Sequence record: PP496440.1 | Reading direction: 5' to 3' (one strand) | DNA length: 64,000 nucleotides | Shown here: one piece after another, positions 3,927 through 59,470 of the stretch | How the letters are laid out: every line of letters starts with the position of its first letter | Numbering within the stretch: the first letter of the stretch is position 1 | The notes under the pieces: generated by a model | What the model saw: the letters and a program-made list of their open reading frames with translations, nothing else | Told to the model about the DNA's origin: nothing | Databases searched by the model: none | Made by a program: the position numbers and the translations under genes

Positions 3927-4185
3927 GCGAAGTGCTCCTCTTGCTGTCAATGGGCTGCTACACACTATAAGCATGAGCAGATCTTCGAGCAGGCCACCTC
4001 GACGGCCCCTGCTACGGTAAACTCGGATTCACCCCTCCACGCGTATATAACGTTTTGGGAACAATTCAAATTACATACGACCAGAGTGCCATGGTGTCCA
4101 TACCTGCGTCAAAACGCCCGTTTGCCATCATGTCGGGATATGCCCAGCCATATGAGTGCTAAGTCATTGATTACCTTGACAATTT

Positions 4186-4210
4186 ATTAGGGGGTATGTG
4201 GCCCCCTAAT
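4186..4210. repeat. Perfect 9-bp inverted repeat in the divergent intergenic region
   Basis: ATTAGGGGG (4186-4194), 7-nt spacer, CCCCCTAAT (4202-4210). Confidence 0.7.
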
Positions 4211-4253
4211 TCATGGAAATTCAGGTATTTTGGCTATATCTGCGTCAAAGTGC

Positions 4254-4282
4254 TTGACAAACGCTGCCAGGCCCTGTATACT
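4254..4282 (+). promoter_or_regulatory. Sigma70-type early promoter
   Basis: TTGACA-17 nt-TATACT. Confidence 0.85.
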
Positions 4283-4345
4283 GCACGGGCGAGCTACTAT
4301 TCCAGCCCGCTACGTCCATGCCCACCGGGGCACGAAGGAACCAAC

Positions 4346-4822
4346 ATGAAGAGCATGATTCGCCGCAAAGATGGGTTTTACACGGAGTTGTTGGCCGGTG
4401 CTAAAGACCCTGTCGCCCTTTCCAAGACTGCATTCAACCGTGGACTGACCCGGATCGTTGCATCTATTACGAGCAGTGTTAAGCTGCGGTACGTAGTAGA
4501 TTCCGAAACCGGTGATGCGGAATACCGGGTGAGAGTGAAGTTTCAGAAAAGCCAGTTGACCCGCAAGGGTACTCCGGCTATCAAGGTGGGACGGGTACTG
4601 GTTCCTGTTGATCTCGACAGCATTGCAGTACATTGCACGTGTCAGGACTTTCGATTCACCTGGTACACCTATTTGAAGAACTCTGGGCACGCTGCCGGTT
4701 GGTTCAAGCAGGTGGAGTTGAAAGGATCTGGCCGCACTCGGGAAGCTGACCACGCAGGTTGCTGCAAACACGTCGCCGGTGTACTGGCAATGGTTGAGCA
4801 GAACGTTATCGTCAAGCTGTGA
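4346..4822 (+). CDS. SWIM zinc-finger protein
   Basis: ATG at 4346 with AAGGAA RBS; HCTCQDF...CCKHV matches the SWIM CxC-xn-CxH signature. Confidence 0.75.
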   Translation: MKSMIRRKDGFYTELLAGAKDPVALSKTAFNRGLTRIVASITSSVKLRYVVDSETGDAEYRVRVKFQKSQLTRKGTPAIKVGRVLVPVDLDSIAVHCTCQDFRFTWYTYLKNSGHAAGWFKQVELKGSGRTREADHAGCCKHVAGVLAMVEQNVIVKL

Positions 4823-4857
4823 CCCAGATGCAGTGAGTGTTACATGATAGAGAAAAT

Positions 4858-4892
4858 AAAACCCCACCGGTTCGCGCCGTGTGGGGTTTTTT
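4858..4892. terminator. Bidirectional intrinsic terminator
   Basis: AAAACCCCAC...GTGGGGTTTTTT between convergent genes. Confidence 0.85.
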
Positions 4893-4909
4893 ATGTCTGA
4901 AATTCAATC

Positions 4910-18527: not shown

Positions 18528-18589
18528 AGCGTATAGCAATCGAATGCGTGGAATTAGCCCTTAACGGCGTCCCCACTAGTGGAGAACAC

Positions 18590-20068
18590 ATGAAATCTGT
18601 AGCCGTTGACTACCAAAAGATAGCCAAGGAATGCCAGTGCACCGAGCTGCCTTCCAAGGTAAGAGTTACTCGTGCACGGGTCTATCCAAACTTGAGGACG
18701 TGCCTACTCTTCCTCAAGTACGATGCCAAAGGTGAACTGGTACAAGCCGAGATCACTGCGCCGTACGACACGTCCACTGAGCCAAAGGTGAGGGTGCTCA
18801 AACATCCTGACAAGAAGTCAGACTTCCTTTCATTATATAGGGCGCTGATCCGCCACCAGATCATACCCGAGTCTATTCCGAAGAAAGGTAACGGGATTGC
18901 ACCAACGCTGGAGGTCATCGGCACACTGGTTAGCCTGCTGCCGGAACGGGATGTCGAAACCTTCCGAACCCTTACCCCGGCCATCCAGACTGGCAGCGTT
19001 ATGTACGTCCCTCTGGTTACGTCCCGGCCAATGCCCATGGTGCAACACTGGATACCTGTTGACCAGCATTCAGAGCTGGGCATGATCGAGCTGGTCGATA
19101 CGGATAGCAAGCCTTTCCTGAATCAGTGGGTCAACAGGTTGAGCAACACCGCCACCGGTTATGTGATCTACACCCCGGAAGGCTCACACGGTCAGGAACT
19201 CGCCTGCTTCCGGGTGCCCAATGTACAAGGGGAGGAACTGTGTGTGGTCAAGAAGGTTGACTTCACCCTGACTGTTGCTCGCACACTCAAGCCGGTACTG
19301 ACTGTATCCACCAAGAGTACTCGGGCAGTGTCCCGCATTCCCCTACCCCACTATCTGATGCTGCGCAATCACCACATCAAGGTGGGCACGGTTATTTCCC
19401 TGCGTCGTAACGACCGAGGTGGGTTGGTGTACCATGAGACGGTGGCCGAGGAAGGCATGACGCCCCTGCCGCTGTGTCCACACTGCCACAGTGGTTCTGT
19501 GCTGCGAGGTAGTAGCAATGACGTGTACTGCAATAACGATTCATGCCGAGGCCTAGCCATCGTGCGACTTCGTTATGTCTTGAACAACAAGCTGGACGTC
19601 AAGTACCTGAGCGACAATAAGGTAACGGCGCTGATCAATGACAAGCAGGACCTGTTCAGCTTGCTTAAGACACCGACGCACCAGTTACGGCATAGACCTG
19701 GCTTTGGTGCACGTACCGTGGACGCACTGGAGGAGAAGCTTAACACTATTGCCGGTCTTCCACTGCACACACTGGCCGAGATGTCCTGCGCTTTCTACAA
19801 CGTGGGCGTGCCCCCACTGGATGAGATGGTGTTCAAGAAGATCTTTTCCGTTATGTCGATTGACTACCTGAAAGCGCTGCCGTCTACCGGCAAGATGTAC
19901 AGTCAGCTGCTCGACATCGAAGGTATCCGCAACAACCGCGCAGTGGCTTTCCTTGCTGGCTGGCCTGCATTTCAACAGTGGATGATAGACCTGAACGCTG
20001 CCCTACAGTCTCGCAGCGCAATCTCCACCACGGTAAATAGCCCAAAACAAATTCGAGGTGTTAAATGA
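18590..20068 (+). CDS. NAD+-dependent DNA ligase-like protein with degenerate catalytic motifs
   Basis: LigA architecture: NTase-like region, OB fold (IKVGTVISLRR), Zn finger CPHC...YCNNDSC, HhH (RPGFGART). The KxDG motif is replaced by NLRT, and there is no BRCT domain. Confidence 0.75.
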   Translation: MKSVAVDYQKIAKECQCTELPSKVRVTRARVYPNLRTCLLFLKYDAKGELVQAEITAPYDTSTEPKVRVLKHPDKKSDFLSLYRALIRHQIIPESIPKKGNGIAPTLEVIGTLVSLLPERDVETFRTLTPAIQTGSVMYVPLVTSRPMPMVQHWIPVDQHSELGMIELVDTDSKPFLNQWVNRLSNTATGYVIYTPEGSHGQELACFRVPNVQGEELCVVKKVDFTLTVARTLKPVLTVSTKSTRAVSRIPLPHYLMLRNHHIKVGTVISLRRNDRGGLVYHETVAEEGMTPLPLCPHCHSGSVLRGSSNDVYCNNDSCRGLAIVRLRYVLNNKLDVKYLSDNKVTALINDKQDLFSLLKTPTHQLRHRPGFGARTVDALEEKLNTIAGLPLHTLAEMSCAFYNVGVPPLDEMVFKKIFSVMSIDYLKALPSTGKMYSQLLDIEGIRNNRAVAFLAGWPAFQQWMIDLNAALQSRSAISTTVNSPKQIRGVK

Positions 20069-20829
20069 ACGTTCAAAACAGAACTCGTATCGCTGTGCTT
20101 GTCGGCGGCGGTCTGGACTCCCACGCCTACATGGTGTTGAAAGCCGACCAGCCACAGACGGACTTCATTCATGTGGACTACGGCCAGCGGGTTGCAGTAG
20201 CCGAGAGAAACGCCGTGTTGCAAATGGCTGAGAAGCTGGGCATTGCCCGCAGTCGCGTGTACACGCTGATCTGCAACAAGAAGAATCACATGCGCAAGGT
20301 CAATGACGGTGTGGGTGTGTTGTTTGGCACCGGCCCGGTCGAGATGGACAATGCGTTTGTTAAGGGGCGTAACCTGTTCCTGATTCAGAAGGCCATCGAG
20401 CTGGGCTACGGTCACGTGCACTTGACGCTGACCCAAGAGCGTGGCCGGATGTTCCCCGATGCCGATCTGGCATTCGTCCAGCTGGTTGACAACCTGATGC
20501 ACCGCAGTTATGACGTGAGGGTATCCGCCCCCTACATCATGGAAGACAAGCATCGGGTGATGTTCAAGGCGTATCGGCATTGCCCCGAGTTCCTCGATAT
20601 GTCTTTCACGTGCTGGGTAGGTCCTTATGTGGAATGTGGCACGTGCCCGCACTGCGTCAAGAAGGAAAAGATTCGAGCCGAGATGATCGTTGAGAAAGCC
20701 GACTACGATCTCAACAAGGATGAACGTGAGGCGCAGTGGAAGCAAGTCAAGGCAGGCTACGGCGACGCGTTGAAGCCCGCTGAGACCATCAACGCGACGG
20801 TATCTGTTGCTAAGGGGGAATTTAAATGA
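20065..20829 (+). CDS. queC: QueC-like PP-loop ATPase (paralogue 1)
   Basis: VLVGGGLDS, VDYGQR, FVKGRN, FPDAD and TCW...CGTCPHC Zn motif. Confidence 0.8.
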   Translation: MNVQNRTRIAVLVGGGLDSHAYMVLKADQPQTDFIHVDYGQRVAVAERNAVLQMAEKLGIARSRVYTLICNKKNHMRKVNDGVGVLFGTGPVEMDNAFVKGRNLFLIQKAIELGYGHVHLTLTQERGRMFPDADLAFVQLVDNLMHRSYDVRVSAPYIMEDKHRVMFKAYRHCPEFLDMSFTCWVGPYVECGTCPHCVKKEKIRAEMIVEKADYDLNKDEREAQWKQVKAGYGDALKPAETINATVSVAKGEFK

Positions 20830-21548
20830 ACAAGTTCTTAGGTTGGTTCAAGCGTCTGCTGGATAAGAAACAAAAGTCAGTCACGATGACGTTGACCGAC
20901 GCCGAAGGTAAGTTGGTCACCATTCACATACCGCAAGGTGCGGGTGTCGAATACACGCTCTCGAAGTCGGGCACCCACTTGAACATCTCAGTTAAAGACG
21001 ACGTGTTCATGTTGCGCACGAATGGCGCAGGAGGCAACGGAGGTGGCGGTGGCCGTGGAAGTTCCAAACCCGGTCTCAACGGTGGCCCCGGCCATACACC
21101 TATCCCCCGGTCCCCAAGCTTCACGGGCGCTGGTACGCCGAACTACGGTCACGCAGGCGACCCGCCTGTTGGTGCTCAAGCTTCGTTCCCTATCGGCGCC
21201 CGAGCAACTGTTTCTGGTGGTGGGCGCGTTGGTGGCCTGTCAGGTGGAAGCGCAAACGGCACAATGGCTGGTGGTGGAGATGGCTTAGTTCCCTCTCCAA
21301 TCCGTAGCTCTGATCGAGCTTACCTGATTAGAGGTTTGTATTACGTCATCACGACGAAGAAGATAACGGGAGAGCAATACCCGATCCATGAGCTTCTGCA
21401 TTGGGGTAAGAAGTCAATCGAACTCATGGGCAAGTTCTCCACCGTCCGAGACGCTATCGACGAACTCAAATTGAAGACGGGTATCCCATTCGAAGACCTG
21501 ACGGACTATCAGGTTGATTCCCTTCCCAAACGACTGTGCAAGCCTTGA
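20826..21548 (+). CDS. Glycine-rich protein
   Basis: 240 aa with a central G/P/S low-complexity tract; located between the two QueC paralogues. Confidence 0.7.
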   Translation: MNKFLGWFKRLLDKKQKSVTMTLTDAEGKLVTIHIPQGAGVEYTLSKSGTHLNISVKDDVFMLRTNGAGGNGGGGGRGSSKPGLNGGPGHTPIPRSPSFTGAGTPNYGHAGDPPVGAQASFPIGARATVSGGGRVGGLSGGSANGTMAGGGDGLVPSPIRSSDRAYLIRGLYYVITTKKITGEQYPIHELLHWGKKSIELMGKFSTVRDAIDELKLKTGIPFEDLTDYQVDSLPKRLCKP

Positions 21549-21550
21549 TC

Positions 21551-21559
21551 GGGTAAATG
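21551..21559 (+). promoter_or_regulatory. GTAAAT-type promoter motif
   Basis: GGGTAAATG about 28 nt upstream of QueC-like paralogue 2. Confidence 0.55.
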
Positions 21560-21586
21560 GCCCGTAACTAATCCGGAGACACCAGC

Positions 21587-22405
21587 ATGACCACTGCGCC
21601 CCCAAAGATTATCGTTGCATTCAGCGCCGGTACAGATTCAACTACAGCGGCCTACTACTATCGCAAGCTCGGCTATCAGGTAACGCTGGCCGTGTTCGAT
21701 GACGGCGCATGCAACGATCCACTTGGCCCTCTGTACGATCCGAACAAGCCGAAGGACTTGACCAACTTCTCGGATGAGTTCTACGATTACGTACGGATTC
21801 ACCAAGAGCACACGGAAGGCCATCTTCAGTTCGACTTCGTGGAGATTCGTTATCCGCAACTCGCATTGCTGGAAGCCAACAAGACAGCCAAGCCCGGTCG
21901 GGACAATGCAGCAGCAGCAGAGGCTGACGGCTTGGGCTTCTGGGTCGGCTTCAAGGGCCTGATGGCAATGTTGCTGATGAGCCACGGCGCCGCCAATGGT
22001 TACGAGGCAGTAGTCTTCGGCCACATGCCGTACAACAACCATTACGAAGATGAGCTGCCCCAGAACTTCGAGCTGCTGCGTCAGTACATGGTTACGGCCT
22101 ATGGCAGCCGAGTGGAAATTCCTCAGATCTACCACCCATTCTATCGACCGAATTTCGATACCAAGGAAAAGGTTATTGAGCTGGCGCAGGCAATCGGCGT
22201 GCCCTTGCGAGATACCTATTCGTGCCGCCGAGGTGAAGTAGAAACCCGAGGTATCCTCCTGCCACTTCTGCGTGGCGGTAACTCCAACTACGTGAGCCCC
22301 ACCTACCGTTGGAAGCATTGTGGTACGTGTGAGAACTGTGTCGAACGCAAGCGAGCCTTCGCGGCGCTGGGCATGAAAGATCCTGCCCCTTATATGGAAC
22401 ATTGA
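21587..22405 (+). CDS. queC: QueC-like PP-loop ATPase (paralogue 2)
   Basis: VAFSAGTDS, TKEKVIELA..IGVPLRDTYSC, HCGTCENCVERKRAF. Confidence 0.8.
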   Translation: MTTAPPKIIVAFSAGTDSTTAAYYYRKLGYQVTLAVFDDGACNDPLGPLYDPNKPKDLTNFSDEFYDYVRIHQEHTEGHLQFDFVEIRYPQLALLEANKTAKPGRDNAAAAEADGLGFWVGFKGLMAMLLMSHGAANGYEAVVFGHMPYNNHYEDELPQNFELLRQYMVTAYGSRVEIPQIYHPFYRPNFDTKEKVIELAQAIGVPLRDTYSCRRGEVETRGILLPLLRGGNSNYVSPTYRWKHCGTCENCVERKRAFAALGMKDPAPYMEH

Positions 22406-22406
22406 T

Positions 22407-23423
22407 ATGGCCCTTTCAATCTGGCCGCTGACCGAAGGTGAACTCGGTCAGGGCCTCGTCAACGAACTGAATCGTACCAGCAAGGCGCTGGTGAACCGGA
22501 GTATGTGGTCTTTGCCATTGCTCCGGCGTTTGTTTTATCGGCGCACCGAGATTGGTGTCCCGGAGCTACTCCACGTCTGTACCAGCATTCATCGGGGCAA
22601 GACTTACTTCTGCCTGTTGGTGAACTTCCGAGATGTGGTGATGGGCAACCCCGAGCAATACGGATGGGACCTAGCTGGCCGGTGGTTGTTCTACGATGTG
22701 GATCTGCTGGATACCCCGGAGTTTAAACAGGTAAACGCGGCTATTCGTAAGGTGGCTACGGTCAACACGGTTACCTACGGTCAAGCATTCGTTCCGGATG
22801 AAGGTGGTATGGGGGAGGAGCACTGGATCAAGAAACTGAAAGGTAACTACCGCCCCCACATCTTCGGCGAAAAGTCAAAACAGGTTATCGTCAGTCAGAC
22901 CTGCGGACACGCGGCTACTCACGTTCTGACCGAGGCAGTGATGTCATTCGGTATCCAGCGCGCTGAGAGATTTCTCGCGGAAGGTCAGTCGGATGTCATG
23001 CCGGAGTTGTATGACCTACCCATGCAGCTAGCCGGTCTAGGCTCGATCCCTGGAACCCGGATTGGCACCGTGTCGCTCACCTGCCGGGATACCCGTGCGC
23101 TGATCGGTACCCTGTCGTTCTACGTTGTGGCAGGCTTGGGTCACAGTGATATCTTGTATATGCACGAGATGCTGATTGATCCGGATCCGAAGTGGAAGCC
23201 TCTATCGGTGGCCGTCAACTTGCACATTCAGGCAATCATGTATGTGCGCTATCTAAACAGCCGATCTGATCGGGCTTCGGACTTGGTTATCAACCTCGGA
23301 TTCAACTTGGACGAGAAGTACAACACATACAAAGAGGTGTTCCGTCCGAACAAGTCCGAAATGGAAATCTATACCGGCATGCACACCGAGCCCGGCGTCC
23401 CACTGTCCTGTTTCAAGGGGTAA
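22407..23423 (+). CDS. FemAB/GNAT-like transferase (paralogue 1)
   Basis: WIKKLKGNYR helix and C-terminal INLG...YKEVF, the pattern of FemAB/Acetyltransf_6-like proteins. Confidence 0.45.
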   Translation: MALSIWPLTEGELGQGLVNELNRTSKALVNRSMWSLPLLRRLFYRRTEIGVPELLHVCTSIHRGKTYFCLLVNFRDVVMGNPEQYGWDLAGRWLFYDVDLLDTPEFKQVNAAIRKVATVNTVTYGQAFVPDEGGMGEEHWIKKLKGNYRPHIFGEKSKQVIVSQTCGHAATHVLTEAVMSFGIQRAERFLAEGQSDVMPELYDLPMQLAGLGSIPGTRIGTVSLTCRDTRALIGTLSFYVVAGLGHSDILYMHEMLIDPDPKWKPLSVAVNLHIQAIMYVRYLNSRSDRASDLVINLGFNLDEKYNTYKEVFRPNKSEMEIYTGMHTEPGVPLSCFKG

Positions 23424-23426
23424 GAC

Positions 23427-24428
23427 ATGTACACTCCGTATTCCCAAAACAGTCTGATGCAATCGATCCCGTTGGATGACCAAGGTACATTCGCCCATCC
23501 GCCGTATACGATGGAAGGAGAGTTAACCGACGTGTGGACGAATCCAAACCTATATGGGTTCGTCAGCCTGTTGAACGGCCAGAGCAATAGCCGGGCCTAT
23601 CGAGACTGGATGACCACCCACAATCTTCCAGCCCTGTTCCTCGGTCCGCACCATGAAGACAACTTCTGGTTTGAATTCAGCACTGGTCTTGTCCCCAACT
23701 GCACGCTGGACTACAACGAGATCAACGTCCAAGGCAACCTGCAGGACTTCCTTGGGAGATTGACGTCATCTCGCCGTCGCTCCGTGCTCAAGGCAAAAGA
23801 AACGGATACGACGATCCACAAGGCAGGCTCGGTAGCCAACTTCAACCTGTATCATCCGGTAGAGGGTAGGCTGTATAGTCTGACCGTGATTCACGAACGC
23901 CGGGTGATGAAAGACATTTCAGAGTTTATCGAATCTAAACTCTGGAGTATGAAGCATACGCCTACTGACCTCACGTACGGTGCATTCACCACCCTGATGG
24001 ATTACATCCGGTTGAAGCAGCGAGATGACACGCCGCTGGGCCACCGGTTGCGCAACGTACAGCTCTTGGTTATCCGAGATGAACGCTCCGGGTTTATCGT
24101 GTCGGTACACCTGGTGGCGATCAACACGTTGAAAGATGATTCCATGAACCCCACCAAGACGTACATGCACTCCTTTGCGCGCATCACTGTTCTCCCTGCA
24201 CGTATCGCCTTACTTGCGTTGATCAAGTCGGTTCAAGAGTTAAACGTCACCAGTCAGTATGCGTCCCGTGCACTGGCGAAGATTGACTATCTTGACGTGA
24301 GCAACGTGGTGCTGTCCGAGCGAGAGCAGTACAAGTCGGACTTCTTCACCGGCAAATGCCAAGTGCGTGCGTGGGCATCCCCGGCGCTGCTGGAACGACA
24401 GTTACCTTTCGTTACGCCGATCCCGTAA
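23427..24428 (+). CDS. FemAB/GNAT-like transferase (paralogue 2)
   Basis: FLGRLTSSRRRSVLKA and YLDVS...QYKSDF. Confidence 0.5.
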   Translation: MYTPYSQNSLMQSIPLDDQGTFAHPPYTMEGELTDVWTNPNLYGFVSLLNGQSNSRAYRDWMTTHNLPALFLGPHHEDNFWFEFSTGLVPNCTLDYNEINVQGNLQDFLGRLTSSRRRSVLKAKETDTTIHKAGSVANFNLYHPVEGRLYSLTVIHERRVMKDISEFIESKLWSMKHTPTDLTYGAFTTLMDYIRLKQRDDTPLGHRLRNVQLLVIRDERSGFIVSVHLVAINTLKDDSMNPTKTYMHSFARITVLPARIALLALIKSVQELNVTSQYASRALAKIDYLDVSNVVLSEREQYKSDFFTGKCQVRAWASPALLERQLPFVTPIP

Positions 24429-24430
24429 CT

Positions 24431-24439
24431 CTGTAAATG
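24431..24439 (+). promoter_or_regulatory. GTAAAT-type promoter motif
   Basis: CTGTAAATG in the intergenic gap upstream of 24483. Confidence 0.5.
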
Positions 24440-24482
24440 ATGGGAACAGCCCCACCATCACTTCATCTCTAGGGTAGTTCCC

Positions 24483-25535
24483 ATGCAAGACTTCGATAAG
24501 ATAATGATCGATAGTAGTTTGACATCCAATCTGGTGTACGCAGGGTTGGGTAACTTGATCACGCCCCGCGCACTTGACCTGCTGATCGAACATCAGGCTG
24601 CACTGGAAAACGTATACGCCAATCTGGAAACGGCCTATCAGATTACCCCACCCTTCCCTTGTGAAGCTGCATTCAATTCCCCTGACAAAGATCCTGTGCT
24701 GGTCGCCGACTATCTGAATGCTACTCCCGCCATCCGTTGCGGAGAGCTGGCTGGATTCGAGGCAAAGCCCGGCAGTTACTACCACGCCCCCGCTGCTGGC
24801 ATTTGCCCGGAACATCGCATCGATGTACGAGGTATGTCTTTGCGTGAGTTCGACCACTATCTGGTTGAGCGTAAGGAGGTGTCACGGATCACTACCAATC
24901 TGGTGGCCGACAAGTTCCGCTGTGAGACGCATGTGTACAAAGTGGATGAAGATCATATCCTGATCCATGACGCCGAACGAGTTGGGATCAGCCAGACGGA
25001 CTTCCGCCGCATGTGGGCGCAGACCCGCCGCCGGGAAATCGCTGAAAACTATCTGCAGTACATGCCCATCGAAGATTCCGCCAAGGATGATCAGGTGGTG
25101 CGACTGATCAACGAAGACGTAGCACGGGTGTTCGCCCAGAACGTCGACTACGACCGCATGATTCCGCCCGAGCTGATCTTCGATGGTCAGGGCAAGCCGG
25201 TGCTGACCGTGCTGAAAGATTGCAACGCCAAGGTATTGGGCATTGGTGTGTACGTCATCTACAAGTCAGCTGACCCAGAGCATGACAGCGAACTGCACTG
25301 GCGTGGCGCTTTCTACGATCACGAAGATCCTCGCGTAGCATCCATGGGCATTGAACACGCTCTGGTTGCCAGCGCACTGCACACAGCGTACGCCTGCAAC
25401 GCGGTCCTCTATCTGACCAAGGCACCTAAGTCCGTGTGCGACGCATGGAAGACGGAAGTGCACCAAGGTTACGGTCTGGTCCGTAATGCGATGCCGGAAC
25501 TGTCTGACACCCCTTACATTCTGGCTATCCAGTAA
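24483..25535 (+). CDS. GNAT-like transferase resembling ATE/Fem aminoacyl-transferases (paralogue 3)
   Basis: C-terminal AFYDHEDPRVASMG...VLYLTKAP...AWK resembles the ATE_C/Fem FYDP..SLG...YLG...YK pattern. Confidence 0.4.
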   Translation: MQDFDKIMIDSSLTSNLVYAGLGNLITPRALDLLIEHQAALENVYANLETAYQITPPFPCEAAFNSPDKDPVLVADYLNATPAIRCGELAGFEAKPGSYYHAPAAGICPEHRIDVRGMSLREFDHYLVERKEVSRITTNLVADKFRCETHVYKVDEDHILIHDAERVGISQTDFRRMWAQTRRREIAENYLQYMPIEDSAKDDQVVRLINEDVARVFAQNVDYDRMIPPELIFDGQGKPVLTVLKDCNAKVLGIGVYVIYKSADPEHDSELHWRGAFYDHEDPRVASMGIEHALVASALHTAYACNAVLYLTKAPKSVCDAWKTEVHQGYGLVRNAMPELSDTPYILAIQ

Positions 25536-25540
25536 ATAGC
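25531..25540 (+). promoter_or_regulatory. GTAAAT-type promoter motif
   Basis: AGTAAATAGC overlapping the upstream stop codon, about 29 nt before the ATP-grasp gene. Confidence 0.45.
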
Positions 25541-25568
25541 CGGTAACTCCATCCATTGAGGTACTTCC

Positions 25569-27653
25569 ATGAAATCCGTGAACCCCATCTTCAAGCACGT
25601 TCCCCAGTTCGACTGGCCTGTCATCCCGCGTGCACAGTGGGAAGAGATCATCAAAGGCAAAGAGCATGTGATGTTCGACTCCTTCTCGCAGCTCGCTCAG
25701 GTGCTGGCTATCCCGGTGAGCAGTTACCAGTTCTACTTCGAAGATGGGTCCACGTTGTTCGCCGGTCCCGAAGCAACCTTCACCGCCGCGCCGTACCCGC
25801 TGTATCAGGACCTTGAATTCGTCCTGACCCCTGACGAGACGTTGGTGCCGGGTCTTGCACTGGATACCAAACCGTGGGGCCTGTACACCGACGAATGGGT
25901 GGACAACTACGAAGGTGCGGACAAGGAAGACATCGGCAACAAGACCGGGTTCGAATTCATTCCGCTGTCGGACGCCTTGAAACTGGTGGTCCTCAACACG
26001 GAGACCATGCAGCTCCAGTACACTGCAATCGAGAGCTTCACGTACGACGGCGTGACTTACGTATACCTGCTGGCTGATGGCGTGTGCTGGGTACTGGCGG
26101 GCAAGTCAGGTGGTCTGGTTGCCAGCGAGCATGACAAAGGTGCGGCGTTCATCATGGTGTCCCATCCCGAGTTCGCCGGGTGCAGCGTAGACAACATGTA
26201 TCCAAGTGAGTTCGGTGAAGCGGAAGCGACGTTCTACGTTCAAGACGAGGAACACAACTACCTGGACGCGGCTAACCGCATCTTCGAAGAAGCCAAGGAC
26301 GTAGGCGCGGGCACATTCCTGACCATTGAGACCGGGGATGGACTGCCGACCGCGCTGGCGTACAACCTGCGGTACAGTGATGTGGCCCACGTTAACCTGC
26401 CGATGCACAACATCCACCAGTTCACTTCTCTGCACGTACGACTGGGTGAGACTCCTAACTTTTCCGAGGCCCCGGAAGCGTGCCGCATGAAAGAGGTTAT
26501 GGAGTATCTGGCGGACCCTGAGTCCCCGGTAGATCATTACTGGTCGGCCATCATGGTACTGGAGAAGAACTTCCCCGGTTTCGCCGACGCCCTGAAAGAC
26601 TCCAGTGTCCCGACCCGTGACATCGTGCACTCCAAACAGGCGTTCAGCTTGGAGATCGATCGCCAGTTCGGCAAGGAAGTGGCAAGCAAGATCGGGCTGA
26701 ACACTGGCGTATTCGCTCAAGTGAAAGACCGTGATGAATGGCTGGTACGCAAACACGAGTTCCCTACCGATAAGGTGGCCGTCAAGTACAACACCAAACA
26801 CTTCATCGGAATCTTCGATAAGGACGAGGTATCGAATTCCATCAACATGTGGCTGGCCGGTCAACCCGGAGAGTCGCTGATGATCGAAGAGTACTTCGGT
26901 GAGGGCAATCAGGAATTCAACCTGTGCTATGTGATCAACGAAGAGTTCGTGCAGCCGACGCTGTTCCTGTGCGAAGTCAACAAGATCCTAGGTAATGACA
27001 CCGGCGGCAAAGGTGGCAACACGCTGGCCTGCCATGATGCTCGTATTAACAAGTACCCTGAGTTCTTCGAGCCGGTCAATGCTGCGCTTGCTAACCTGCA
27101 TGAGCACGTGGAAGGTGTGAAGGGCTGGGTTGACCTGAGCTTCATGGTCCGCGACGGAATCCCTTACTTCACAGAGTGGTGCATTCGAATTGGCTGCTCC
27201 AACAACGCCACCATCGTGCGCCAGATGGAGACCCCGCTCGACGTTCTGCTGACCAACGTGGTTAACAAGGTGCATACCGAGCTGTCTTGGAAGCACTCCA
27301 TGTCTGTCAGCGTGGACATCTACAGCATGCCGCTGTCCGCAGGCAATGATGCCAACATGCAGTTCACCGAGTCGCTGACCACGCCGGTCGAGATGGTGTC
27401 CCCGCTCAATCTGGAACTGGCGGCGGAGAGTTTCTTCGACCCGATTGATTCGGCCTGGAACGCGGTGTACGACGGCTACATTGTCGAGGCGTACAACCGA
27501 TATGGCACCGTCTCGGGGTATTCCACCAACTGGAACTTCGCCTGCAATGCGGCGTACAATCACTTGAAAGATCAGTCGGTGTTGTACGGGGCATACCGCG
27601 AAGCGCCTGCCCACCACGACCCACTGACTCTGTTCCCTTTCCTCAAGGCGTAA
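25569..27653 (+). CDS. PurD/GARS-like ATP-grasp amide ligase with an N-terminal extension
   Basis: LEIDRQFGKEV, VAVKY, MIEEYF.E..EF, NDTGGKGGNT and DLSFMVRDGIPYFTEWCIRIG parallel the PurD ATP-grasp motifs. Confidence 0.75.
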   Translation: MKSVNPIFKHVPQFDWPVIPRAQWEEIIKGKEHVMFDSFSQLAQVLAIPVSSYQFYFEDGSTLFAGPEATFTAAPYPLYQDLEFVLTPDETLVPGLALDTKPWGLYTDEWVDNYEGADKEDIGNKTGFEFIPLSDALKLVVLNTETMQLQYTAIESFTYDGVTYVYLLADGVCWVLAGKSGGLVASEHDKGAAFIMVSHPEFAGCSVDNMYPSEFGEAEATFYVQDEEHNYLDAANRIFEEAKDVGAGTFLTIETGDGLPTALAYNLRYSDVAHVNLPMHNIHQFTSLHVRLGETPNFSEAPEACRMKEVMEYLADPESPVDHYWSAIMVLEKNFPGFADALKDSSVPTRDIVHSKQAFSLEIDRQFGKEVASKIGLNTGVFAQVKDRDEWLVRKHEFPTDKVAVKYNTKHFIGIFDKDEVSNSINMWLAGQPGESLMIEEYFGEGNQEFNLCYVINEEFVQPTLFLCEVNKILGNDTGGKGGNTLACHDARINKYPEFFEPVNAALANLHEHVEGVKGWVDLSFMVRDGIPYFTEWCIRIGCSNNATIVRQMETPLDVLLTNVVNKVHTELSWKHSMSVSVDIYSMPLSAGNDANMQFTESLTTPVEMVSPLNLELAAESFFDPIDSAWNAVYDGYIVEAYNRYGTVSGYSTNWNFACNAAYNHLKDQSVLYGAYREAPAHHDPLTLFPFLKA

Positions 27654-27656
27654 TCC

Positions 27657-28820
27657 ATGAGCACTCCATTCCAAGAGTTCACCCTAGAAGGGTGGATTCG
27701 CTACATGAGAGATGAAAGCATCATCTGGCGCGCGTACGCTGATGGTCATCCGGATAAGGTCGAGTTCAGCCCGGAGTGGCGTGACGAGATGTATCGGTTG
27801 ATGGTGCAGTTCAAAGATCTGCTGCCGATGTCGTTTTCCAATCCGGTGTACGGCTTCACTGAAGGTTGGCTGGAAGGGCTCGGACTCCAGCCCTTTTATG
27901 GCGATGATCCGTTCAATCCGATGGTGCAACCGCTTAGCCACCCTCTGGTGCATGTGGGGCTTCCGTTTACTCTGAGCGAGCTGACGGCGGGCGTATGGGA
28001 CTGTCAGTCCCTGAGCGCTCACCTGGAGCGTCCGCTGCTGGTCGATACATTCGAACCGATCCCAGTGCCATCTATTAGCCTGGACGCTTACAAAGCCGTC
28101 CTGACCGTACGGGACCGGGAAGAGATCGTGATGAGTGCGGGAACCCCGGTGAACTACTTCCTCTGGTTGAATAGTCCGATCACCGAACTCAAAGACGACT
28201 TCGACGTTTATCTGGCCAGCCTGACCAAGAAGCGCCGCTACAAAGTGAAGCAGGCACTGGCGACAGTGGGCACCGAAGAGAACCCGGCTATCAGCGTCAG
28301 TACTGGATCTCGTTTCGGCGAAGGGTTGTTGTCCGATCAGGTGAACAGCATCCTCGCGACTTTCGAAGATCCGGTGGACATCGAGTGCATGCTTCTTCAG
28401 CTGCTGTTCGGGGTGGCAACCTGCAATACCCATCCGCATCTTGTCGATCTGGTTTGTGCAGACCATCAGTTGGGGATCTTCATCAGGCGCAACGGCCACA
28501 CGATGAATTTCCTCTACAACCGTGACCCGGACAACCGCGCTGACTCAGGCATCAACCTGCTGACCCAGTACGTGCGCCATCTGCACATGAACCGCCCGGA
28601 AGGTGTGATGTACGTGGACCCGACATGTCGATATCGGCCTGACGAGGACAGTATGAACACCTACAAGCGGGTGATCACCAACGAGAACCGGTATCACCCA
28701 ATGCCGTTCGTCTCGGCTGACCCTGCGCATATCGAAGGTGTGATTACCCCGGCGTTCATTGCAGGTCATTGGCAGATGTCGGCGTCCAATGGCCCGGCCA
28801 ATCCTGAGATGATGGAGTAA
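27657..28820 (+). CDS. FemAB/GNAT-like transferase (paralogue 4)
   Basis: FDVYLASLTKKRRYKVKQAL, a hallmark Acetyltransf_6/FemAB helix, and YVDP...TYKRV. Confidence 0.65.
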   Translation: MSTPFQEFTLEGWIRYMRDESIIWRAYADGHPDKVEFSPEWRDEMYRLMVQFKDLLPMSFSNPVYGFTEGWLEGLGLQPFYGDDPFNPMVQPLSHPLVHVGLPFTLSELTAGVWDCQSLSAHLERPLLVDTFEPIPVPSISLDAYKAVLTVRDREEIVMSAGTPVNYFLWLNSPITELKDDFDVYLASLTKKRRYKVKQALATVGTEENPAISVSTGSRFGEGLLSDQVNSILATFEDPVDIECMLLQLLFGVATCNTHPHLVDLVCADHQLGIFIRRNGHTMNFLYNRDPDNRADSGINLLTQYVRHLHMNRPEGVMYVDPTCRYRPDEDSMNTYKRVITNENRYHPMPFVSADPAHIEGVITPAFIAGHWQMSASNGPANPEMME

Positions 28821-28822
28821 CC

Positions 28823-29770
28823 ATGGCAAAGCACAAGGTCAAAAGGTTGGAAATCAACCACATCTACGACTTCTACCCGTTGTATCAGGTGATGTACGGG
28901 CGTGGCATGGAGACCAAAGCGTTCGAGGTCTCCAAGTTCGCCAAGATGGTGCTGGACTTCGAAGCATCAACCAGTACTCGCCGGAAGTGGGACGTGCTGG
29001 AACCTTTCAGCGGTATCAGCGAGCATGAACACTTCTTCGCTGCTACTGGCCTGAACATCGAGCACTACACCGGCATGGACATCGTGGTTCCAGATGGGGC
29101 CAAAAACGTCATTCAAGGTGACATCATCACCGACACCCTTCCGTTTCACGTCAACGCGGTGTTCGCCTTCTACTACAGCTTGCAGAATGTACGGGACGCC
29201 AAGACTGGCATGCACACGCGGGAAAAGCTGGTGGAGTTCTTCGACAACATCCTCGGCCATCTGCAAGTCAATGCGAACAAGAGCCGTATGCCCGCAGTGT
29301 TCGCTTTCCACCTTGACCAGCCTGAAGACCCTAATTACTATCTGACGTCCCGTGCCGACGTTGGAGGTGAACAGTCATGGACCGCACCCGCGTGTGGTCT
29401 GCTGGGGCAGTGGGTCAAGTGCAAGCCTACTGATACTCTGGAAGTGAAGTGCAATCTGGACACCTGGTACAACCGTGTGCAGTGCACCGCGTACGATCAG
29501 GCGGAGGATATCCAGATTCTGGTAAATGGGCGAGTAGTGGCTACCGTTGAGATCGAACAGCCGTTCACCCATCGGGTCTGGACCGAGCATGAGGTGATCG
29601 ATATCCTGCGGGGTCTGGACTACAATCTGCACTTCCACATGTACAACGGCACCATCTCCAATTACGACTTCTTGATGACCCGTTTGGAAGACAAGCCCGT
29701 TCCCGGCGATGAAGAGGCTAATACTAATCAGATGACAACTGATATGCTGGTTGTCGTTAATCCGAGGTAA
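28823..29770 (+). CDS. Class I SAM-dependent methyltransferase-like protein (paralogue 1)
   Basis: VLEPFSG, YTGMDI, IQGDI and VNAVFAFYYSL. Confidence 0.65.
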   Translation: MAKHKVKRLEINHIYDFYPLYQVMYGRGMETKAFEVSKFAKMVLDFEASTSTRRKWDVLEPFSGISEHEHFFAATGLNIEHYTGMDIVVPDGAKNVIQGDIITDTLPFHVNAVFAFYYSLQNVRDAKTGMHTREKLVEFFDNILGHLQVNANKSRMPAVFAFHLDQPEDPNYYLTSRADVGGEQSWTAPACGLLGQWVKCKPTDTLEVKCNLDTWYNRVQCTAYDQAEDIQILVNGRVVATVEIEQPFTHRVWTEHEVIDILRGLDYNLHFHMYNGTISNYDFLMTRLEDKPVPGDEEANTNQMTTDMLVVVNPR

Positions 29771-29772
29771 GA

Positions 29773-30690
29773 ATGGCTAAGCCCAAGATCCCTACACGAA
29801 CCATCCCCACGTTGTACCAAGACTGGGGATTGTACAGCGCCATCTGCGAACTGCCGCAGGAGACGATGCTGATGATGTCGCGCTTCGTGGCAGACCGGAC
29901 TATAGAGCATGCTAATAGGCATGACATAGATCGTGTGTCGATCATGGAACCTTTCAGTGGTCCTATCCCGTATTACGAACCTGATATCGACAGTTTCCTT
30001 ACTAGAGCTGGCATAGGTTTAGACACGTATGATCATGTGGAATACCTAGATCACGGTGAGCTGACCAAAAAGAACAATATCATCATCGGGGACATCACCA
30101 CCATAGATCTTAAGCAAAAGTACGATGTCATCTACGGTAGTTACGGTAGCTTGGCCTGCCTGTTGCTGGATCAGACGCATAACAAAGCGTACGAGAAATC
30201 TCACGCGGCGTTGGTCAACATTCGCGAGCACCTGAAACCCGGCGGCATCTTCGTGCTAAACGCCAATGGGTCAAGCGAGAGTCTGCTGAATAACCTGTTG
30301 AACTCTGATGAGCCGGATCAAGAGATTCGCGTCCGTCCGGGATCGCAGTTAGGTAAGGCGTTCCGAATCAAACCAGACAGTAACGCGCTGCTTCGCTTCA
30401 CCTATCATGTGGAGTACGACCGGCGCACCACCTGCACCATGTGCCACTACAGCGATATGGTGCTGTCTGTAAATGGAGTTGACATCCAGCGCTGGGAGGT
30501 GGAATCCCCGACGTATCTTGCGCCGCTGGATGAACCCGAACTAATTCGAATGGCAGGTATGGCTGGTTTCAATCTGGACAACACTGAGTTCTACGGATTG
30601 GACACCACCGGTTATCCTGCCTTCTTCAAAATGGATACGGTCTGCGACGGGTCATGGTCACCCGCCGAGTTCGTAGTCTTTCGCACCTAA
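29773..30690 (+). CDS. Class I SAM-dependent methyltransferase-like protein (paralogue 2)
   Basis: IMEPFSG, IIGDITTIDLKQKYDVI and HLKPGGIFVL. Confidence 0.8.
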   Translation: MAKPKIPTRTIPTLYQDWGLYSAICELPQETMLMMSRFVADRTIEHANRHDIDRVSIMEPFSGPIPYYEPDIDSFLTRAGIGLDTYDHVEYLDHGELTKKNNIIIGDITTIDLKQKYDVIYGSYGSLACLLLDQTHNKAYEKSHAALVNIREHLKPGGIFVLNANGSSESLLNNLLNSDEPDQEIRVRPGSQLGKAFRIKPDSNALLRFTYHVEYDRRTTCTMCHYSDMVLSVNGVDIQRWEVESPTYLAPLDEPELIRMAGMAGFNLDNTEFYGLDTTGYPAFFKMDTVCDGSWSPAEFVVFRT

Positions 30691-30700
30691 CGAGGTTCCT

Positions 30701-31906
30701 ATGAGCGTTATCATCCCCACCGTAGCGATGGAGAGTGGTCAGCCAGACATGATCATTCCGGGTTGTGCGACACCTACCCCGGTCAAGTCTTCCAAGAAGC
30801 TGTACGAACGTGAAGACTTGATGGCGTACGACAGCGAGTCGGAGCATTGGCAGAAGCAGCTGGCCCGCCGCTACGCTCACCATGGTGAGATGGTCGGTGT
30901 GTTGAACAACGTCGAGGTGGTGCCGGAAGCCACCTATCAGAACTTCGACATGAAGATCACCCCGTACACCGCGCAGTTGATGGACCAGAACGACCCCAAC
31001 TGCCCGATCCGTCTGCAGTACATGCCGACCAACAAAGAGCTGGAGTCGATTCAGCGTGAAGAGACCATGCACAACGAGCTGGGCGAGGAAGAGGACACCA
31101 TCCCCGGTACCTCGGTCGTGCACCGCTACCCGCGTCGCGTCTTGTTCCTGACCACTACCCAATGCGCCAGCTTCTGCCGTTACTGCACCCGTGCACGCAT
31201 CGTCTCCCACGGCGGCGAAGCGGCGATCACCAAGAAGCACCTTGACGCCAGCATCGACTACATCGCTGGGAACAAGGACATCGAAGACGTGCTGCTGTCC
31301 GGCGGTGACCCGTTCATCCTGCCAGACAACAAGCTCGACGAGATTCTCGGTCGTATCCGCGCCGAGGCACCTCACGTTCGCTTCCTGCGTATCGGTAGCC
31401 GACTGCCGGTACAGATGCCGACCCGTATCACTCCAGAGCTGTGCGAGATTCTGGAACGCCACAACGTCAACATGGTCAACATCCATGTGAACCATCCGAA
31501 AGAAGTGACCCCTCTGCTGGCCTCCCGGATGAAGATGTTGCGCAAAGCGGGAGTCATGCTGGGCAATCAGGCGGTCCTGCTGAAAGGCGTGAACGACTCC
31601 ATCGAGGTGATGACCGAGCTGTGCTTGCGCATGGTCGAGATGGGTGTGCGTCCGTACTACGTCTACTCCAACGATCCGGTGGCCCAGGCCGCACACTTCA
31701 CCGTGTCGCTGAAAGAGATGCTGAATATCAACGAGGGTATGCGTGGCTTCCTGTCTGGCCCGGCTATGCCAACCTTCGTGGTAGACGGCGTGGGTGGCTT
31801 GGGCAAGATGCCGGTGCAGAAAGAGTACGTCGGCTTCGATAAGAACGGCGGTATCTTCGCCCAGAACTTCGAAGGGAAAACGGCCCGCATGCCCCATCTG
31901 GAATAA
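30701..31906 (+). CDS. kamA: Lysine 2,3-aminomutase family radical SAM/PLP enzyme (KamA/EpmB)
   Basis: HRYP.RVL, CASFCRYCTR (CxxxCxxC), LSGGDP, RIGSR.P..P.RIT, NQ.VLLKGVND, PYY, and GGLGK (PLP lysine). Confidence 0.95.
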   Translation: MSVIIPTVAMESGQPDMIIPGCATPTPVKSSKKLYEREDLMAYDSESEHWQKQLARRYAHHGEMVGVLNNVEVVPEATYQNFDMKITPYTAQLMDQNDPNCPIRLQYMPTNKELESIQREETMHNELGEEEDTIPGTSVVHRYPRRVLFLTTTQCASFCRYCTRARIVSHGGEAAITKKHLDASIDYIAGNKDIEDVLLSGGDPFILPDNKLDEILGRIRAEAPHVRFLRIGSRLPVQMPTRITPELCEILERHNVNMVNIHVNHPKEVTPLLASRMKMLRKAGVMLGNQAVLLKGVNDSIEVMTELCLRMVEMGVRPYYVYSNDPVAQAAHFTVSLKEMLNINEGMRGFLSGPAMPTFVVDGVGGLGKMPVQKEYVGFDKNGGIFAQNFEGKTARMPHLE

Positions 31907-55789: not shown

Positions 55790-56761
55790 ATGAAAGATAT
55801 GCGCTATACCGAACTGTTCTATTCCCTCCAAGGTGAGGGGTTGCGCGTTGGGGTGCCTTCGGTATTCTTCCGCATGTTCGGTTGCAACTTCGAGTGCAAG
55901 GGATTCTCCAATCCTGAAATGAAAGATCCCAACGTGATCCCGGCCATCAATCTGCTGGCGATCAACGACGCCGATCTGGAACTGGGCTGTGACTCTCGTT
56001 ACAGCTGGCACAAGGACTATCGCAACCTGGCCATCAAAGCTGCTCCCCATGAGGTGGCCAACACTTTGATCGACTTCACGAAAGAGAAGCACTTGGCGGC
56101 GGTGGCTCGCTGGCCCAAGCGCAATCGAGCAGGTAATGTCGTCCGCTTGATCCCCGGACTTCCTATAGATGGAGTCCTTCAGATTGCTACGCTGGCGCAC
56201 ATACCAGACTGGGTGTTCACCGGCGGCGAACCGTTCATGCAGCAAGAGCAGCTGGAAGGTCTGCTGCGTCACGCCATGTACGTTGTGGAAGAGGAGGACG
56301 TTAACTTTGGCCTGCTTGGCCTGCCGATGCTGACTTTCGAGACCAACGCCAGTATTTCGATGAGAGACTCCATGCTGGATTGTCTCAAAGATTACAACGA
56401 TGGCTTCGGCGACGTGCACTTCTCTAACAGCCCCAAGCTGTCATTCACGGGAGAGCATCGCAACGCGGCTCTGAAGCCCTACGTTATCGAGCAACAATGC
56501 TCTATCGGGGGCTCCAGTTCGTTCAAATTCGTGGTGCGCCCTGCTCGCGAAGACTTCGATGAGCTGATGGAGTTCATGCAAGAGTATCAACCCTACATGG
56601 ATGAAGGTAGTATCGAGAACATATACGTCATGCCGGTCGGCGCCAGCTTGCACCAGCAACAAGCCATCGCCACGCAGGTTGCGGAGCTGGCACTGGAATA
56701 CGGACTGTCCTACAGCCCACGGCTCCAGTGTGACCTGTGGGCCAACAAGATAGGGACGTAA
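55790..56761 (+). CDS. queE: 7-carboxy-7-deazaguanine synthase (radical SAM)
   Basis: ELFYSLQGEG...PSVFFRMFGCNFEC...CDS, VFTGGEPF, FETN, SPKL, FKFVV, and PRLQ. Confidence 0.9.
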   Translation: MKDMRYTELFYSLQGEGLRVGVPSVFFRMFGCNFECKGFSNPEMKDPNVIPAINLLAINDADLELGCDSRYSWHKDYRNLAIKAAPHEVANTLIDFTKEKHLAAVARWPKRNRAGNVVRLIPGLPIDGVLQIATLAHIPDWVFTGGEPFMQQEQLEGLLRHAMYVVEEEDVNFGLLGLPMLTFETNASISMRDSMLDCLKDYNDGFGDVHFSNSPKLSFTGEHRNAALKPYVIEQQCSIGGSSSFKFVVRPAREDFDELMEFMQEYQPYMDEGSIENIYVMPVGASLHQQQAIATQVAELALEYGLSYSPRLQCDLWANKIGT

Positions 56762-58729: not shown

Positions 58730-59470
58730 ATGGCTATTGATGCACATAAGTATCCGTTGTTGGCGGCGGCTCAAGACCGACTCATCGAGTCTGGTCAGCG
58801 CTATTTTGCGAATGACAATATCCATCCGGTATTTGAATACCTGGACAACATGGCATTGCCTATGCCAGTCGGGGCTCAGACACTGGAGCAGATGAAGGAG
58901 GCTGTTCAAGAGAAGTACGGCGAGCTGCTGGAACTCCTCTTGATCGATTGGGCTGCGGATCATAACTCCGAAGGTACCCCGCGCCGTGTCGCCAAGATGC
59001 TGGTAGAGGAAACCTACAAGGGTCGCTATCAGCCGACGCCGAAGATCACCGCGTTCCCCAACGACAGCAAGCGTACCCAGATGATCGTGATCGGGCCGCT
59101 GCGCGTTGAGAGCCAGTGCAGCCATCACCATCAGAACATCCGGGGATGGGCATGGGTCGGTGTTATGCCGTCGGAAGATGGTACACTGATCGGTCTGTCG
59201 AAGTTCAGCCGCCTACTTGATCATATCTGCCGCCGTCCTCAGATCCAAGAGGAAATGGTTGCTCAGGTGTGTCACCAGTTGAACGATCTGGTCAAGGACA
59301 ACCTCGGTGTCGCGGTCGTGATCAACGCAGAGCACCAGTGCATGGCCGTTCGGGGCGTGCAAGAGCCGTGTGCCCAAACCGTTACGTCGGAGATGCTGGG
59401 TGCGTTCCTCGAACCTGGTGTTCGTCAGGAGTTCCTGACCTACGTGCAAATGAACCCAGCTCCATGCTAA
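58730..59470 (+). CDS. folE: GTP cyclohydrolase I
   Basis: TPRRVAKM, SQCSHH, IGLSKF.R....RRPQIQE, and AEHQCM..RGV. Confidence 0.95.
   Translation: MAIDAHKYPLLAAAQDRLIESGQRYFANDNIHPVFEYLDNMALPMPVGAQTLEQMKEAVQEKYGELLELLLIDWAADHNSEGTPRRVAKMLVEETYKGRYQPTPKITAFPNDSKRTQMIVIGPLRVESQCSHHHQNIRGWAWVGVMPSEDGTLIGLSKFSRLLDHICRRPQIQEEMVAQVCHQLNDLVKDNLGVAVVINAEHQCMAVRGVQEPCAQTVTSEMLGAFLEPGVRQEFLTYVQMNPAPC

Follow-up and report, generated by a model that had tools for sequence, protein, structure and literature searches.

The window analysed here is a 64,000-nucleotide stretch of DNA that forms the right end of the genome of Pseudomonas phage vB_PpuM-KoPa-5 (PP496440.1, 201,088 bp; window coordinates equal record coordinates minus 137,088). 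Our subject is two of its genes, queC1 and queC2, which are both annotated as coding sequences in the record and whose products belong to the QueC family of PP-loop ATP-pyrophosphatases. They lie in a single plus-strand operon (18548 to ~31906) in which stops and starts overlap or abut. KoPa-5 is a cultured jumbo phage, and its host is P. putida KT2440. Eight sister phages of P. putida KT2440/PaW85 were 86–99.5% identical to it across the 8 kb surrounding the QueC pair, and in the CEPEST collection these phages form the "G3 jumbo" cluster; QueC and DNA modification go unmentioned in the paper on that collection.

Sequence features and families of QueC1 and QueC2

Both open reading frames read as originally predicted. 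QueC1 contains ...VLVGGGLDSH... (PP-loop G14-G-G-L-D18-S19) and QueC2 contains ...AFSAGTDST... (S13-A-G-T-D17-S18). Each keeps the four-cysteine zinc site that had been claimed for it, formed by C183, C191, C194 and C197 in QueC1 (Cx7CxxCxxC) and by C213, C245, C248 and C251 in QueC2 (Cx31CxxCxxC). The insert of about 25 residues described within the QueC2 site was also found: the loop was ~23 residues longer than the canonical Cx8C and 12–21 residues longer than in Q2 relatives, whose spacing is 10–19, and this length was peculiar to the KoPa-5 genus. AlphaFold2 models of QueC1 and QueC2 had predicted local distance difference test (pLDDT) values of 85.5 and 86.6, with values below 50 in residues 219–238 of the QueC2 insert. 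The top Foldseek matches of both models were QueC (3bl5, 2pg3) and Cap9 (9nto_B).

Canonical QueC is defined by SGGxDS, YxQxHxxE, VPxRN, YPDC and Cx8CxxCxxC (2026 PF06508 survey, PMC13329287). Neither protein has this set of motifs. QueC1 reads GGGLDS, YGQRVAVAE (no His), VKGRN, FPDA and Cx7C, and QueC2 reads SAGTDS, FDDG, VGFKG, YEDE and Cx31C. QueC2 retains Tyr-x-Asp (Y153, D155), with an aromatic residue plus Lys in place of RN and FDD in place of YxQ. Both proteins scored above the gathering cut-off of 22 bits for Pfam QueC (PF06508; QueC1 68.6, QueC2 47), and both fell short of the canonical QueC equivalog TIGR00364 (61.9 and 23.7 bits versus a cut-off of 150.3). On the PADLOC model for Cap9 (PDLC00911) they scored 62.8 and 30.3 bits, versus 215.4 for the Cap9 reference P0191, and on the NCBIfam model for QatC (NF041925, cut-off 280) QueC1 gave no match and QueC2 gave 13 bits.

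The best sequence match of QueC1 in the PDB was Cap9 (E = 2e-8, versus 2e-4 for B. subtilis QueC). In Cap9 the conjugated deazaguanine is contacted by R86, Y115 (stacking), D117 (hydrogen bond) and the L83 backbone, and the PP motif consists of S18, D22 and S23 within a general motif SxGxDS (Cap9–CdnD structure paper). In a HMMER alignment to 9nto_B the four contact residues corresponded to R102, F130, D132 and V99 of QueC1, and the PP residues to G14, D18 and S19. These contacts, together with YxQx5E, indicate a likeness of active sites, not membership of the Cap9 group.

A word search with QueC1 found no relative outside the KoPa-5 genus. Relatives came from a full HMMER search of 1.84 billion representative proteins with a profile built from QueC1 and its orthologues, which returned 4834 proteins at E ≤ 0.001. 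GGGxDS characterised a large family, most of it viral, that we name Q1-type and that current annotation labels plain "QueC". In an alignment of 143 among the best 150 matches, the first PP-loop position was Gly in 91 and Ser in 50, R102 and D132 were invariant, and Y39, Q41 and E47 (YGQx5E), N103 and the four Cys were conserved as well.

The QueC2 profile recovered 16 proteins at E values of 4e-124 to 2e-83, followed by ordinary QueCs from 4e-20. Across this family plus more distant partners from the loci described below, the Q2-type PP-loop was S-x-G-x-(D/E)-S, in which S, G and S were invariant, the Asp was nearly so (Glu in two proteins) and the second residue was M, A, Q or G; further motifs were FDDG, V-G-[FYW]-K, G-H-x(6)-Y-x-D-E-x-P and YSC...C-G-x-C-x-x-C. 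Basal Q2-type proteins had the canonical SGGxDS and ~30% identity to ordinary phage QueC. Judging from these alignments, the unusual PP-loops are conserved family traits that reflect neither chance nor decay. The original prediction had called both loops non-canonical. This applies to QueC1, whose strongly conserved loss of the first Ser is the sole true departure, and does not apply to QueC2, which fits SxGxDS.

A maximum-likelihood tree of 68 sequences placed the 23 Q1-type rows in one clade (SH-aLRT 92) and the 18 Q2-type rows in another (99), with E. coli QueC, ordinary QueCs and the Cap9 reference P0191 outside both. A phylogeny against QueC, Cap9 and QatC had been proposed at the outset; the tree separates both clades from the first two, and QatC, for which the tree held no reference, was judged by hidden Markov model (HMM) score only, far below the cut-off. 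A profile–profile comparison of Q1 and Q2 gave a homology probability of 97.9% at an identity of only 18%. These sequence data support the view that QueC1 and QueC2 are two old, distinct lineages, not redundant copies or decayed duplicates.

Co-occurrence of the pair and its genomic setting

We read 11 loci as sequence: the window, seven metagenomic contigs (L013, L014, L019, L021, L023, L025 and L026) and three IMG/VR jumbo-phage genomes that were 94–100% complete (G001–G003, of which G001 holds L017 and L027). The genomes were found with an alignment of six sequences; single-protein queries gave none. A Q1-type gene stood beside a Q2-type gene at all 11 loci, usually adjacent to it and often with an overlap of ~10–25 bases, and in each of the three genomes the pair provided the only PF06508 matches. 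The 2.5-kb contig L026 (NCBI GCA_015232735.1, contig JADFZC010000695.1) carried three tandem QueC-family genes (451–2390), two of them Q1-type and one Q2-type. Protein P0094 (557 aa) is a natural Q1–Q2 fusion, in which residues 9–250 scored 127 bits with the Q1 HMM and residues 274–552 scored 119 bits with the Q2 HMM; in P0086 (434 aa) a Q1-type domain is fused to another, SGG-bearing QueC-like domain. Because of the co-occurrence, the frequent translational overlap and the P0094 fusion, joint action fits well, either in a complex or in consecutive steps, and a QueC1/QueC2 heterodimer seems plausible from sequence. The claim that QueC1 and QueC2 are more than duplicates of a single preQ0 synthase was thus borne out by two distinct lineages that were always together in the 11 loci and fused once.

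The only cultured phages in which tblastn found Q1-type genes were nine of P. putida and one of Achromobacter, phage Motura. The Motura locus (L035, NC_049849, 7983–14201) encodes QueD, a Q1-type QueC (GGGIDS), an AsnB-like amidotransferase, TGT, an unknown protein, QueE, a second unknown protein and GCH-I. Motura is cultured and would allow work on a Q1-type enzyme that has another partner.

KoPa-5 has the gene set of a DpdA-dependent pathway, namely a TGT/DpdA-like gene together with FolE, QueD-like and QueE-like genes (Table 1). Within the window, folE and queE are 34–38 kb away from the pair; dpdA and queD are located elsewhere in the genome. Pfam Radical_SAM (PF04055) did not detect the QueE-like gene, which tblastn located 2 kb upstream of folE; its product shows QGEG..GCNFEC, an insert of ~30 residues, the motif CDS and TGGEP. 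The 407-aa QueD-like protein has two PTPS/QueD-like halves, an acidic insert and a motif similar to CxxxHGH; its appearance is that of a tandem T-fold QueD. Homologues of the DpdA-like protein (22–52% identity) occurred in jumbo phages of Vibrio (GR7B, GR11A), Xanthomonas, Erwinia, Burkholderia (BCSR5) and Achromobacter (Motura), and in phage NCTB; among these phage records only Motura also appeared in the QueC1-type tblastn matches.

The same pathway accompanied the pair elsewhere. Each of G001–G003 had GCH-I, PTPS, a radical-SAM gene and a DpdA-like homologue 27–30% identical to that of KoPa-5, the last undetected by Pfam TGT and detected with the KoPa-5 protein as query. In L017/G001 and L023 the DpdA-like gene lay directly upstream of Q1, and L025 had the order Q2-Q1-QueD-x-QueE with FolE 6 kb farther. 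QueF was not found in the four genomes searched (KoPa-5 and G001–G003), and we rejected a route through preQ1 for this reason. On gene content, the pair is the QueC-level step of a DpdA-type DNA-modification pathway and not a stray duplicate.

Table 1. Genes of the QueC operon and of the deazaguanine pathway in KoPa-5 (window coordinates unless marked as record coordinates; aa, amino acids)
Feature	Coordinates	Strand	Remarks
First operon gene	18548..20068	+	stop overlaps QueC1 start; homologue of an L013 gene with a Pfam OB_DNA_ligase domain
QueC1, Q1-type QueC-family PP-loop ATPase, 254 aa	20065..20829	+	GGGLDS, YGQx5E, GRN, FPDAD, Cx7CxxCxxC
Gly-rich protein between the QueC genes, 240 aa	20826..21548	+	no family match
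QueC2, Q2-type QueC-family protein, 272 aa	21587..22405	+	SAGTDS, FDDG, WVGFK, GHxxYNxxYxDExP, YSCRRG...CGTCENC, 31-residue Zn-ribbon loop
Five genes 3' of QueC2 (338, 333, 350, 694, 387 aa)	22407..28820	+	694-aa product: weak ATP-grasp match
Two paralogous methyltransferase-fold proteins (315, 305 aa)	28823..30690	+	weak Methyltransf_31 match
Lysine 2,3-aminomutase-family radical SAM protein	30701..31906	+	CxxxCxxC, Pfam LAM_C; last enzyme gene of operon
Divergent QueE-like radical SAM protein, candidate 7-carboxy-7-deazaguanine (CDG) synthase	55790..56761	+	annotated hypothetical
GTP cyclohydrolase I (FolE), first 7-deazaguanine pathway step	58730..59470	+	annotated hypothetical
Tandem QueD-like protein, 407 aa	PP496440.1 17352-18554 (L005 577-1800), outside window	+	annotated hypothetical
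TGT/DpdA-like protein, 533 aa	PP496440.1 80011-81609 (L003 646-2247), outside window	-	DSGGFQ, CNCPVC; record annotates only part, as hypothetical

The accessory genes beside the pair varied from locus to locus. Lysine 2,3-aminomutase-family proteins were encoded in the window and L023, subunits of a B12-dependent lysine 5,6-aminomutase in L021, and AdoMet decarboxylase and spermidine-synthase-like proteins in L017 and L021. ATP-grasp proteins occurred in the window, L014, L019 and L021, Amidoligase_2 in L023, and a Fem/ATE-like GNAT protein in L025, the sole neighbour reaching that family (Pfam Acetyltransf_6 match). Methyltransferase-fold proteins were present in the window, L013, L014 and L019. 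A family of 335–338 aa followed Q2 in five of the 11 loci (window, L013, L017, L021 and L023; family HMM), and we dropped the idea of an obligatory trio of the pair and this family because it is confined to those five. L021 also encodes, beside the QueC pair, a UvrD-type helicase that contains an intein with a LAGLIDADG endonuclease (4173–7415, Pfam matches).

The Gly-rich protein occurred in the KoPa-5 genus only and had no counterpart at any other Q1/Q2 locus; being absent elsewhere, it was rejected as a conserved partner. The product of the first operon gene gave no match itself in a Pfam scan and was read as similar to the C-terminal part of an NAD-dependent DNA ligase (Zn finger, HhH, no adenylation domain). 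KoPa-5 has a complete NAD-dependent ligase annotated at another site (record 121096–123075). An XPB/Rad25-like superfamily-2 helicase of 529 aa lies two genes 3' of folE (window 60061–61650, +), with a 193-aa open reading frame between. The operon annotation and the Pfam matches of operon genes showed no CD-NTase or Cap10 and no QatA, QatB or QatD, and the operon proteins begin with MN, MA, MS and similar residues rather than with the M-G/S-G-rich N-terminus of a CD-NTase.

Proposed function of the pair

We consider QueC1 and QueC2 to be, on balance, a conserved two-protein replacement for QueC that processes CDG for DNA modification, mostly in jumbo phages, and that in KoPa-5 probably starts an amino-acid side chain. 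KoPa-5 shares this replacement with many large phages known only from uncultured material. We hold with greater confidence that the two proteins work together on CDG or its amide in a DpdA pathway. Activation of the 7-carboxyl of CDG by the pair fits best because the Q1/Q2 core, the CDG pathway and DpdA are constant, and the amine and ligase accessories vary. An amide ligase for CDG is a reasonable reading of the sequences, because QueC1 keeps the deazaguanine contacts of Cap9 and lacks the His of YxQxHxxE, and because amide-forming and amine-making enzymes recur nearby.

The guanine of the phage DNA is probably exchanged for a 7-deazaguanine base that is decorated and undescribed. We suggest, tentatively, that the product in KoPa-5 carries an amine other than NH3. 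More tentative still is its possible identity: an undescribed 7-deazaguanine in the DNA of KoPa-5 and uncultured relatives, in which the pair would form an N-substituted carboxamide or amidine from the 7-carboxyl and β-lysine, a polyamine or a short peptide. If the product is N-substituted, it follows that the Q1/Q2 pair would be a general CDG–amine ligase, with the amine varying according to the accessory genes of each phage.

Every step of the mechanism that we propose is inferred. The phage would make CDG through its own FolE, tandem QueD-like and QueE-like proteins. QueC1 would bind CDG, adenylate the carboxyl and pass it to a nitrogen nucleophile, giving an amide (the first C–N bond); we propose this step because its Arg, aromatic and Asp contacts and the PP-loop Asp-Ser are kept and the canonical His is absent. 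QueC2, probably in complex with QueC1, would carry out a second ATP-dependent step on that product, which may be dehydration, amidine formation or a second ligation; it keeps the SxGxDS PP-loop, the Tyr-x-Asp base contacts and the Zn site. The nucleophile in KoPa-5 would probably be not ammonia but β-lysine or a related amine supplied by the lysine 2,3-aminomutase of the operon, and the ATP-grasp, Fem-like and methyltransferase-like proteins would then extend the side chain. The DpdA-like enzyme would insert the base into DNA, before or after decoration.

Four points weigh against this proposal. The first PP-loop Ser is missing in QueC1, and because the Cap9 S18A/S23A double mutant is dead (Cap9–CdnD structure paper), QueC1 might bind ATP poorly. 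No amine-making or amide-forming enzyme was recognisable next to the pair among the genes scanned in G002 and G003; because the pair occurs there without such neighbours, its basic product could be an ordinary base: 7-amido-7-deazaguanine (ADG), preQ0 or G+. The Q1-type protein of Motura is partnered by the AsnB-like amidotransferase and not by a Q2-type protein, so a Q2-type partner is not obligatory. Lastly, assigning a half-reaction to each protein goes beyond what sequence can show.

Such an ordinary base is the product in the alternative that survives best, which we regard as possible, though unlikely: the pair divides the half-reactions of an ordinary QueC, with one protein turning CDG into ADG using ammonia and the other turning ADG into preQ0 or the amidine G+. 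The base would then be a known one, and the neighbouring ligases would act elsewhere or later. Accessory-poor loci, which carry the pair with QueD, QueE and FolE and without another QueC, are consistent with this division of labour, as is the resemblance of basal Q2-type proteins to ordinary phage QueC, and the pairing in Motura with a glutamine-dependent AsnB-like enzyme suggests ammonia chemistry. However, a single QueC does both steps everywhere else, and a conserved split lacks a clear reason. Amide-forming and amine-making enzymes also stand beside the pair too often for chance, and a nitrile would give Fem-like and ATP-grasp enzymes no handle; no QueF is encoded. As to the nucleophile in KoPa-5, we regard ammonia (a split ordinary QueC) and an amine such as β-lysine (a new base) as about equally probable. 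We slightly prefer the amine on account of the operon: its four candidate aminoacyl-transferases, ATP-grasp protein and aminomutase all require a point of attachment on the base, and in the absence of QueF no aminomethyl group is to be had.

It is improbable that only one protein is catalytic, the other being a pseudo-enzyme that lends structure or specificity to a heterodimer built like the QueC/Cap9 homodimer. QueC and Cap9 do act as dimers (Cap9–CdnD structure paper), QueC1 has lost its first PP-loop Ser and QueC2 its YxQ and RN, two Q2-type proteins have Glu for the PP-loop Asp, and a fusion exists in P0094. Yet in both families the Asp/Ser of the PP-loop, the Asp and the aromatic residue that contact the base, and the four Cys are all strongly conserved, which would be unexpected for a mere scaffold.

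Attachment of CDG by one paralogue to a protein N-terminus, either of a phage protein or of a decoy against the type IV cyclic-oligonucleotide-based antiphage signalling system (CBASS) or Qat, is very improbable: the Cap9 match in the PDB, the Cap9-like YxQx5E and Cx7C spacing of QueC1 and the Gly-rich protein encoded between the two genes speak for it, but QueC1 falls in another clade and far below true Cap9 (62.8 versus 215 bits), the QatC cut-off is not approached, the CBASS and Qat partners are missing from the operon annotation and Pfam matches, the Gly-rich protein has MNKF, not M-G/S-G, at its start and was found at no other locus, and the pair is accompanied by DpdA and the CDG pathway. 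The further suggestion that the pair counters CBASS or Qat defences found no support; nothing points there, and the context is a DpdA-type DNA-modification pathway.

To our knowledge, eight 7-deazaguanine bases have been described from phage DNA, and the synthesis of each involves one QueC-type enzyme. A conserved version with two enzymes would point to further and larger anti-restriction 7-deazaguanine bases in DNA; it is linked to a divergent DpdA, and the amine-making and amide-forming enzymes that go with it change from locus to locus. The PP-loop variant GGGxDS also marks a large viral family of enzymes. A limited literature search found no description of a paired QueC system or a GGGxDS family in the 2023 survey of phage 7-deazaguanines (which covers QueC, QueC* and Gat-QueC), in the 2026 PF06508 survey (ten clusters) or in the 2021 jumbo-phage overview (which treats the Motura deazaguanine system in general terms only).

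Comparison with known QueC-family systems

The pair shares with canonical QueC the fold, the four-Cys Zn site, the PP-loop ATP-pyrophosphatase and the context of FolE, QueD and QueE, and QueC1 retains the RN motif and the aromatic-x-Asp substrate motif. It differs in having two phage proteins where one normally suffices, in FPDA for YPDC in QueC1, and in FDDG for YxQ, FK for RN and the long Zn loop in QueC2.

QatC resembles QueC2: its fold is that of the QueC family, and its Zn-site loop is likewise extended (Cx19C). The N- and C-terminal extensions of QatC are absent from both QueC1 and QueC2. We rejected orthology to QatC on HMM score and context.

Among phage enzymes, QueC* of Campylobacter phage CP220 and Gat-QueC of phage 9g are QueC variants proposed to make ADG and G+ (2023 survey). 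Like the pair, they are QueC-family proteins of phages, which take the reaction to the amide or past it and supply DpdA; unlike it, they are single proteins, and Gat-QueC has a fused glutamine amidotransferase. Gat-QueC was rejected as an identity for the pair, as both QueC1 and QueC2 are single-domain proteins without a class-II glutamine amidotransferase domain, and Campylobacter phages were not among the tblastn matches of QueC1, QueC2 or P0058.

Cap9 offers a parallel for the chemistry proposed for QueC1. It is defined by Y/FxQx5E, RN, YxDC and CEx6C (2026 PF06508 survey) and performs the first QueC half-reaction only, with an amine in place of ammonia. QueC1 matches its structure (9NTO) with a root-mean-square deviation of 3.1 Å and a template modelling score of 0.79 by target. 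The two have YxQx5E, RN, aromatic-x-Asp and Cx7C in common, and the His of YxQxHxxE is absent in both. QueC1 differs in being phage-encoded within a DNA-modification pathway and in having Gly for the first PP-loop Ser, and we rejected orthology on HMM scores, separate clades and context. Attack of an amine on the CDG adenylate has been shown for Cap9 and is proposed here for QueC1. If this proposal is true, the amine-ligase chemistry that Cap9 and QatC use in defence would also be used by phages, on the opposite side of the conflict.

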